DNA of 63,882 bases, filler included, from Cercozoa sp. M6MM (GCA_040357565.1; 11 parts of 11 records of this genome joined end to end with filler, not necessarily neighbours in it); one strand, 5' to 3'. Counted from the first letter of the whole stretch, positions 19,618 to 22,202 are shown. Numbers and translations: made by a program. Notes: generated by a model from the letters alone, not told the origin.

Positions 19618-19837
19618 TATGGCGCTGTAATTTGTATGGTATGCAATTGTGAGTACAGTCAAGTACTGTACAGTACGTATAGATACGGTATCAAACGGAT
19701 AGTACGTGCTGCGCTGTGATTTTCTGTCCAGTCCTTNNNNNNNNNNNNNNNNNNNNNNNNNNNNNNNNNNNNNNNNNNNNTTAATTAATTAANNNNNNNN
19801 NNNNNNNNNNNNNNNNNNNNNNNNNNNNNNNNNNNNT

Positions 19838-19896
<59 letters not shown>

Positions 19897-19941
19897 GTTT
19901 GGATAAAATCCTGCCAGAGAAGCCGATGCACCCGTGCGTAG

Positions 19942-21566
19942 GTACCCTGACTACGATACCGACGCACACTAGCACGCCCACTGGTGCATACTTCTTGCGT
20001 ATACCCTTGGAATGTCTGAGTTGACTCTCGATATAGGTTTTCATGTGCAGGCACGCCAACATCAACTGAGTCAGCCACCAGCACCCCTTCGGGTATTATA
20101 ATTTAATTTTTGGGCATGACCTTACGTCTTCTGATCTCAGGTACACCGACGTTTACGCCGACGCCAAGTCGTACCTCATTCAAGAATGACACACATGTGT
20201 CAAAATGTTCTTTTAAGACTAATTTGTTTCATGCGACTCTTGCTGGCAGCAACAGTGACTGGTAGGCTTCGTGTATCTTTGAAGTGTGTTTGTTGTCACG
20301 TTGTGCTAACGTTTAGCTTCAGGGTCTCCTACTCCGACACCGTCGCCTACGTGTAGCATCAAATAAACTTGCATGACCTTCAGCAAAATGCGAGAGTGGT
20401 TGATCAGCAACGTCGACTGCCAGCAGCACTCCCTCGCGTATCCAAGTTTTCGTCTCAGTACAACATACACATCAATACTCGAATGCTTGAATGTGAGAGC
20501 AGCATCACCGACGTCGACTGCGACGTCTTCGCCGACAGAGAGCTCCACAGGTTCGCGCACAACAGCACCATCAAGTATGTTATCCAGTTGAGTGTCTGCA
20601 ACTTTGAGTATAGGTACGCTGACTACGATACCGACGCACACCAGCACAGTCACAGGTGCTTCATCTGTGACTCTTGACTGGTCAATAACTACTTTTCTGT
20701 GCAGCAACACCGACGTCGACACAGACTGCAACTCCTACAGGTACCTGATTTCGCCTCGATATGCACAAGCTAATTTACTCAATCATGTTTGCGAAGTCAC
20801 GGGTACCTCCACGCCGACTCCGTCGGGTACCTTTTTTTTTGGTATAGCTTGTCCGTTATGACGACCGGACATTGAACCCGGGCAGGCACTCCGACACAAA
20901 CTTCTACTCCGTCGCAGACTCGTACACCGACATCGATAAACCTTTTGTGCATTTGGGTGATGGTAATGTGTGATGCACAGCCACAGCGACACCTACGCCG
21001 ACCGGTTCAAACACAGGTTCGATAGGTCACAAAGGAGTTGAATAAATTTACAAGATGTGGAAAGTTTGTGATGCAAAGGGACTCCTACAAGTACTCCAAC
21101 CGGCACGACGACTGGTACTCCAACAAGTACTCCAACCGGCACGGCGACTGGTACTCCAACAAGTACTCCAACCTGCACGACGACAGGCACTCCGACTCCG
21201 ACCGGTCAAACTGAACTTTATAAATATACCGGTACCTTTCTGTTTGCTTAGCCACGACAACAGGGTCAACAACCAGCACAGGCACTCCTACTGGTACACG
21301 TCGCACCGTCTGTTTGAAAACACCGATCCACACTACCTACAGGAACACCAACGCAAACACCGACGCCAACACAAACGCCAACACAAACACCTACAACTAC
21401 AGGTATATAATGTGACTCGTCCGTTACTTGCATGCTATGCGTCACTCAAATGTACACTGAAAAAGGAACTACGACTTCCACGGGCACTGCTTCTGCCACT
21501 CCGACCGACACGCCGTCTCCGACTCCAACAGGAACAAACACACCAACCCCGAATCTTCTGCCATGA
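19942..21566 (+). CDS. Micro-exon gene encoding a Thr/Ser/Pro-rich (X-T)n mucin-like region; 5' part missing
   Basis: 16 exons with AG/GT borders, all phase 1, translating GTLTTIPTHTSTPT|GTPTSTESATSTPS|GTPTFTPTPS|PTVT|...PTPNLLP*. Confidence 0.85.
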
Positions 21567-21816
21567 TAGTGAGATGCCGCGACCGATCATTTTCCTTCAG
21601 CAATGGTCTGGTCGGGTTGAGTGGATATAATTCGATTACTTTCGTTTTAATTGAATGTAAAAACTGCAGCTAAACGATAGCAAGCGTCCCGTAGGCAGAC
21701 GGACTCGCCATCATCGCATACGCGGCGCAGGCGACTAAGAGCCGCTCTCGCTCAGCAGCGTCGAATGCTCATCGTGAACATTCGAGTCCGACTGAGCCTC
21801 CAAGTCTACCAAAACA

Positions 21817-22108
21817 TCATTCAGTTTGAGACACTGACAGATCCTGCAGGTGACGAACAAAGCACGTACCGACATAATGTGTCTGTGCTCGCATTTCAAC
21901 GGAACGTTGTGCATTAACGTCGACTTGACCCTGGTTTTCTTGTCGCTGATGGGTCGGGTGCATGCTGAAAGATGACTGTCGCGTGATGGGCGGCAGTTTA
22001 AACTCAAAGCCCGTTCCGACCAGAGGGTTCCGCGAGGAGTCGTGGAACTGCATCGGAAGAAGCCACTGCCACCAGTGCTGACCAAAGACTGCGCGAAAAT
22101 TCGCACCT
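21817..22108 (-). CDS. Terminal exons of an unknown gene
   Basis: Exon-like blocks with GT-AG borders next to the contig end; frame and stop uncertain. Confidence 0.3.
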
Positions 22109-22132
22109 GCGGCCACAGCACAGACAATAAAA

Positions 22133-22202
<70 letters not shown>

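Follow-up and report, generated by a model that had tools for sequence, protein, structure and literature searches.

Does a run of very small, symmetric exons in the genome of a marine amoeba form a set of cassettes from which variable surface stalks are spliced, or is it the 3′ part of a constitutively spliced gene for one disordered, mucin-like tail? The question arises from one piece of a window of 63,882 nt (the whole stretch of DNA analysed, in which 11 parts of 11 records of the Cercozoa sp. M6MM genome, GCA_040357565.1, are joined end to end with filler), where a first-pass annotation had proposed a micro-exon cassette gene rich in Thr. The piece, at positions 19837-22202, is a complete contig of the short-read draft assembly, 2366 nt long with a GC content of about 50%, and is bounded by simple repeats: a (GT)28 at its left end (19840-19895, + strand; period 2 and 28 copies in a tandem repeat scan) and its reverse complement, a (CA)34, at its right end (22135-22202). 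The left repeat lies inside an intron, about 45 nt before the first exon of our model, and the Thr-rich gene is therefore truncated on its 5′ side.

Cercozoa sp. M6MM has since been described as Lemnamoeba sinaloensis (Apofilosa, Rhizaria), a marine, amphizoic amoeba isolated from the gills of triggerfish (PMC11069148, PMC13746701). Its genome has a GC content of 52.8%, and 99.5% of its introns are of the GT/AG type (PMC11069148, PMC13746701). The draft gives 10 introns per mRNA and a mean CDS of 1182 nt (PMC11069148); the long-read assembly gives 13 introns per gene with a mean intron length of 82 nt, a load reported as exceptional for a 27-Mb genome, which lacks an Introner signal and for which a cause has yet to be established (PMC13746701). 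The median intergenic distance is 162-176 bp (PMC13746701, PMC11069148). AC:GT repeats make up about 2% of the genome (PMC11069148, PMC13746701), and the short-read contigs start and stop in them (PMC13746701), with which the repeat ends of our piece agree. The piece thus matches these published traits in its GC content, its short GT-AG introns, its intergenic spacing and its AC:GT contig ends.

The gene model lies on the + strand and opens with the 3′ end of the upstream intron (19896-19941), whose acceptor reads GCGTAG|GT. It continues with exon 1 (19942-19983, 42 nt, (G)TLTTIPTHTSTPT), exon 2 (20051-20092, 42 nt, GTPTSTESATSTPS), exon 3 (20141-20170, 30 nt, GTPTFTPTPS), exon 4 (20250-20261, 12 nt, PTVT), exon 5 (20323-20352, 30 nt, GSPTPTPSPT, with T as its last base), exon 6 (20408-20437, 30 nt, STSTASSTPS) and exon 7 (20503-20550, 48 nt, PSPTSTATSSPTESST). 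Exon 8 (20614-20655, 42 nt, GTLTTIPTHTSTVT), a duplicate of exon 1, is followed by exon 9 (20705-20740, 36 nt, ATPTSTQTATPT), exon 10 (20797-20826, 30 nt, VTGTSTPTPS), which has the weakest acceptor (GCGAAG|TC), exon 11 (20886-20921, 36 nt, GTPTQTSTPSQT) and exon 12 (20981-21004, 24 nt, PTATPTPT), for which an in-phase donor 12 nt downstream is possible. Exon 13 (21079-21204, 126 nt, 42 residues) contains a 36-nt tandem repeat; it is followed by exon 14 (21252-21293, 42 nt, ATTTGSTTSTGTPT) and by exon 15 (21343-21402, 60 nt, GTPTQTPTPTQTPTQTPTTT), which contains a 12-nt repeat. The terminal exon (21466-21566, GTTTSTGTASATPTDTPSPTPTGTNTPTPNLLP) is entered in phase 1 and closes with three consecutive stop codons, the TGA at 21564-21566 being followed at once by TAG and TGA.

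All 15 internal exons were confirmed base for base where the first-pass annotation had placed them, each preceded by AG and followed by GT. That annotation had described them as phase 1-1 and multiples of 6 nt, with a terminal exon behind them, and both statements hold: every internal exon is symmetric in this phase and 15 of 15 have a length divisible by six, over a range of 12 to 126 nt (median 36 nt; eight are at most 36 nt long and 13 at most 51 nt).

On the strength of its sequence, the model is very likely real. The introns measure 47-79 nt (mean 60). Reading through them shifts the frame in 12 of 15 cases and meets a stop in nine; none of the 15 escapes both, and no long + strand open reading frame is found in the piece without splicing. 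Exons and introns also differ in composition, the former with 13% T and 40% C, the latter with 32% T and 20% C. With six positions allowed per boundary, and with dinucleotide frequencies of 6.2% for GT and 4.9% for AG, the chance of finding AG or GT as needed at all 31 boundaries is about 1e-15. A frame-blind scan of the + strand counted 149 X-[T/S] dyads in runs of at least three, compared to 26 ± 9 (maximum 58) in shuffled sequences, and these runs coincide with the exons of the model. We rejected a gene on the minus strand, where the boundaries would read CT..AC and few dyad runs occur.

The exons share a strict register at the level of the protein. At the 121 even codon positions the residue is Thr or Ser in 117 cases (Thr alone in 102), bearing out the earlier observation of such a residue at nearly every second position. 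The alternate residues, X (n = 106), are mostly Pro (44), Ser (17) and Gly (10), then Ala, Thr and Gln, with few others. All four Thr codons are in use (35 ACT, 13 ACC, 32 ACA and 30 ACG), indicating that the constraint acts on the protein rather than reflecting a DNA repeat. The introns obey the same register: all 16 split an X codon behind its first base, and each time the codon before it is one for Thr or Ser. This fixed placement within the dyad accounts at once for symmetry in phase 1-1, for lengths of 6n and for a dyad register that continues without a break. Intron density is high as well, with 16 introns in 731 coding nt, about 2.4 times the genome average (Poisson p ~0.002) when that average is taken as about one intron for every 107 nt of coding sequence (10 introns in a mean CDS of 1182 nt; PMC11069148). 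In part, small exons are a habit of the L. sinaloensis genome, which carries 13 introns per gene; the uniformity of those seen here remains special.

Splice signals and coding dyads coincide in this gene. The donor consensus is G|GTAC, with A as the +3 base of 10 of the 15 introns and C as the +4 base of nine, and the codon at the junction encodes Gly in eight of 15 cases, compared to 10 of 106 internal X codons (p = 1.7e-4). Read in frame, G|GTAC is the Gly-Thr codon pair GGT ACN; the splice signals and the dyads consequently share one register. Donor look-alikes of the form G|GTAC occur within exons 10 and 13, at 20802, 21114 and 21150, in the register of the real donors. The common register of donor consensus and repeat explains both these look-alikes and the many alternative sites at 6n offsets. 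The first-pass annotation had seen alternative sites shifting by 6, 12 or 24 nt; among frame-keeping pairs, 41 of 61 do shift by a multiple of six, and the remainder follow no such rule. Several acceptors and donors are weak. A later in-phase donor for exon 7 (A|GTATGT, 24 nt downstream), which would lengthen that exon to 72 nt as had been suggested, would leave an intron of 39 nt, shorter than any other in the gene, and we do not favor it.

The available 3′ part of the product, about 243 codons, is composed of approximately 45% Thr, 18% Pro and 13% Ser. It contains two Glu, one Asp and two His, no Lys or Arg, a single Cys and very few hydrophobic residues. Its C-terminus (...PTPNLLP) has no hydrophobic tail and no membrane or GPI signal; any anchoring must accordingly reside in the missing N-terminal part. 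AlphaFold2 predicted no secondary structure for exon 13 (mean pLDDT 57, pTM 0.17), which is weak evidence, the input being a single sequence and a 41-residue fragment. Two features typical of mucin-like PTS domains are present, namely a long stretch dominated by Thr, Ser and Pro, and tandem repeats (36 nt, 3.1 copies; 12 nt, 3.8 copies). O-glycosylation is not documented for L. sinaloensis in PMC11069148 or PMC13746701.

Database searches returned likeness in composition only. In Pfam (hmmscan with exon 13, the terminal exon and four flanking open reading frames) there was no match, and for exon 13 and the terminal exon none even at E <= 1; Rfam gave only sub-threshold noise. A phmmer search with exon 13 against 1.84 billion cluster representatives returned seven weak matches (E 3e-7 to 2e-4) to stretches of low complexity, for the most part TPTxTPT linkers, within proteins that are unrelated elsewhere. 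We do not regard these as relatives, since the likeness is confined to the linker. No protein holding exon 13 was found in this set, in which the protein of the neighboring gene is present. Look-alikes of exon 13 in the ESM Atlas all score below 0.9, and all are unnamed viral clusters. JGI metagenome contigs, scanned with exact and degenerate DNA patterns of the motif in exons 1 and 8, yielded no relative and one chance match, at 979-1007 on the minus strand of PJEL010187101.1; this fits the degenerate GTLTTIPTH pattern and was dismissed as it has neither a Thr-rich context nor introns.

Two modes of growth have left traces in the gene. Exons 1 and 8, noted earlier as near-duplicates, are identical at 36 of 42 nt (86%), with four synonymous codon changes and one non-synonymous. 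In exon 13, a 36-nt unit that codes for TPTSTPTGT(T/A)TG is repeated in tandem at 21081-21193 (3.1 copies with 92% matches), and exon 15 has a 12-nt repeat (21344-21388, 3.8 copies); outside these two repeats the domain is degenerate. The sequence thus indicates that exon duplication and slippage within exons have both acted, in line with the alternative that the first-pass annotation itself had offered, a history of exon duplication. Outside a few splice-site bases, the introns flanking exons 1 and 8 resemble each other no better than shuffled sequences do (z = 2.6 and -0.8), which is odd, as it would not be expected for a plain tandem duplication of exon plus intron at such exon divergence, and points to constraint or gene conversion limited to the exon. 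Exon pairs 2/9 and 3/10 are marginally similar, and their introns do not align.

Three other origins were considered and set aside. Duplication of exons 1-7 as a block into exons 8-14 was rejected because only one pair (1/8) is clearly similar, and the introns of the marginal pairs do not align. An Introner or transposon origin of the introns is contradicted by their dissimilarity to one another (best z = 4.7) and by the absence of an Introner signal in the genome (PMC13746701). A recent origin of the X-Thr repeat from (AC)n, which would be read as (Thr-His)n, does not agree with the scarcity of His (only two of 106 X residues) or with the fact that ACA is not the dominant Thr codon.

The public protein set seems to lack the Thr-rich gene, which was probably missed in annotation due to its low complexity. 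During annotation repeats were masked, and models that lay in repeats or lacked RNA support were discarded (PMC11069148); either cause, repeat masking or lack of RNA support, would fit; if the gene was dropped for lack of RNA support, the case for its expression in culture would be weaker. The only annotated gene on the contig is MHM6MM_009155, an 84-aa hypothetical protein encoded on the minus strand in two exons (22053-21870 and 21805-21735), which we identified through the protein match of a flanking open reading frame. Upstream of the annotated ATG its frame runs on without a stop up to the (CA)n repeat, and the real start may lie elsewhere. Its single intron (phase 1, 64 nt, G|GTACGT...TAG|AC) has the donor type of the Thr-rich gene. 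The two genes converge, with 168 nt (21567-21734) between their stops, and this gap must contain both 3′ UTRs. The gap holds no AATAAA; a TGTAA lies at 21655-21659, 89 nt past the stop codon of the Thr-rich gene.

We consider the locus to be, with a probability of about 0.62, the 3′ part of a constitutively spliced gene for a disordered, mucin-like tail that grew by exon duplication and slippage. The transcript would be spliced by intron definition, and the product would be an extended, disordered Pro/Thr/Ser stalk or linker, presumably densely O-glycosylated and extracellular, attached through the missing N-terminal part. Its architecture would have arisen by repeated duplication of a phase 1-1 exon unit, together with replication slippage inside exons, and would be maintained because G|GTAC, the donor consensus, doubles as the Gly-Thr codon pair. 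Splicing would be a less likely source of length variation than the tandem repeats of 36 and 12 nt.

This reading has to be weighed against the one proposed at the outset, in which the micro-exons are cassettes, and skipping or the use of in-register alternative donors yields stalks that vary in length and sequence, as in the micro-exon genes (MEGs) of schistosomes. The claim that any subset of exons could be skipped is sound as far as frame is concerned, given that all internal exons are symmetric, and 118 of 120 ordered exon pairs join without a stop; it fails for the joining of exon 5 to exon 15 or 16, which creates a TGA because exon 5 ends in T. The weak acceptors and donors, the donor look-alikes within exons 10 and 13 and the preponderance of 6n shifts among alternative sites could all serve such a system, and varied stalks might be of use to an amphizoic amoeba of fish gills (PMC11069148, PMC13746701). 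Against this stand the introns, which measure 47-79 nt in a genome with a mean of 82 nt. Across 65 eukaryotes surveyed, skipped exons are more frequent where introns are longer, and retention of introns is regarded as the most frequent mode outside animals (PMC6142364); skipping with introns of this size is a priori unlikely. Furthermore, exon symmetry and the 6n rule follow from the duplication of one exon type, so that selection for skipping is not needed to explain them, and the parts skipped would differ little within a low-complexity stalk. We therefore regard the use of these exons as cassettes as unlikely.

A different doubt concerns whether the gene works at all. The locus could be a paralogue that is in decay or not expressed, or a low-complexity stretch that only resembles a gene, and it is compatible with this that exon 13 is absent from the 1.84 billion cluster representatives in which the neighboring gene is present, and that the annotators removed models in repeats or without transcript support (PMC11069148). 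Masking of low-complexity sequence accounts equally well for the missed model, however, and decay is difficult to reconcile with 16 exons in one frame, with AG and GT intact at all 31 boundaries, with a dyad register maintained at 117 of 121 positions despite mixed synonymous codons, with changes between exons 1 and 8 that are mostly synonymous, or with a clean terminal stop; a non-working gene is thus decidedly unlikely. The product could instead fold into a beta-solenoid with a Thr ladder (TxT-type), for example that of an ice-binding or adhesive repeat protein, in which Thr at every second residue would place the Thr side chains on one face of a beta-strand. The first-pass annotation had named a TxT-type surface protein among its options, an idea that finds no support here. 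Pro fills 44 of 106 X positions and recurs every two to four residues, a spacing incompatible with regular beta-sheet hydrogen bonding. The sequence has no coil period of 12-15 residues, no Cys ladder and almost no hydrophobic core residues, and the AlphaFold2 model of exon 13 contains no strand, although a single-sequence prediction for so short a fragment carries little weight. A beta-solenoid is accordingly very improbable, and a disordered, mucin-like tail encoded by constitutively joined exons remains the reading that we prefer.

Several known systems share parts of this architecture. In schistosome MEGs, as in the Thr-rich gene, very small symmetric exons make up the greater part of the coding sequence, and skipping is safe for the frame (PMC4350168, PMC10526429). 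The analogy that the first-pass annotation drew to them is apt for architecture and does not extend to sequence kinship or intron length: MEG introns are long, up to 5 kb (by the MEG definition in PMC10526429), whereas those found here measure 47-79 nt with a mean of 60. All MEGs encode a signal peptide, and their alternative splicing is documented (PMC4350168, PMC10526429). MEG families appear to be restricted to flatworms, while the Thr-rich gene belongs to a rhizarian amoeba and has no sequence similarity to them, its exon 13 having matched only linker-type stretches by composition in the phmmer search; it also holds all of its exons to one phase and a 6-nt register, neither of which MEGs require. 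Human symmetric exons of a single phase that originated by tandem duplication are typical of disordered proteins (PMC3632108), and elastin, the titin PEVK region and collagens resemble the Thr-rich gene in having runs of such exons that encode extended or disordered repeats (PMC3632108). Those genes come from animals, have long introns and are known to use exons alternatively, whereas the gene described here has a unicellular host, introns of about 60 nt and a dipeptide instead of a longer repeat unit.

With respect to the product, the closest parallels are mucin PTS domains and gp72 of Trypanosoma cruzi, which likewise consist largely of Thr, Pro and Ser, contain short tandem repeats and are predicted to be disordered. 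The Thr/Pro domain of gp72 (PTVTPTP...) is taken to carry about 30 phosphoglycan units (PMC3630849), providing a protist precedent for a Thr/Pro stretch as a carrier of sugars. Animal mucins have their repeat domain in a single large exon (PMC13345508), in contrast to the 16 exons (median 36 nt) of the Thr-rich domain. Linkers of the TPTx or PT type (Pfam PT repeat, PF04886) have the X-T dyad in common with it, along with Pro at many X positions; neither exon 13 nor the terminal exon matches the PF04886 profile, and this resemblance is one of composition only.

If it is indeed a missed low-complexity gene, the locus would be a warning for inventories of surface glycoproteins in such genomes. 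Were its exons used as cassettes, it would represent a generator of isoforms, MEG-like by convergence, in a free-living amoeba associated with fish, varying a glycosylated surface stalk combinatorially in length and sequence, an outcome to which we likewise give little chance. The locus is an extreme and very regular sample of the intron load of L. sinaloensis, and a compact test case both for whether a protist with short introns can skip symmetric exons and for how introns multiply with repeats in this lineage. Since GGT ACN pairs are themselves the donor consensus, one possibility is that X-Thr repeats are sites at which new introns originate; if such repeats do gain introns, this would bear on the unexplained intron richness of the L. 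sinaloensis genome.
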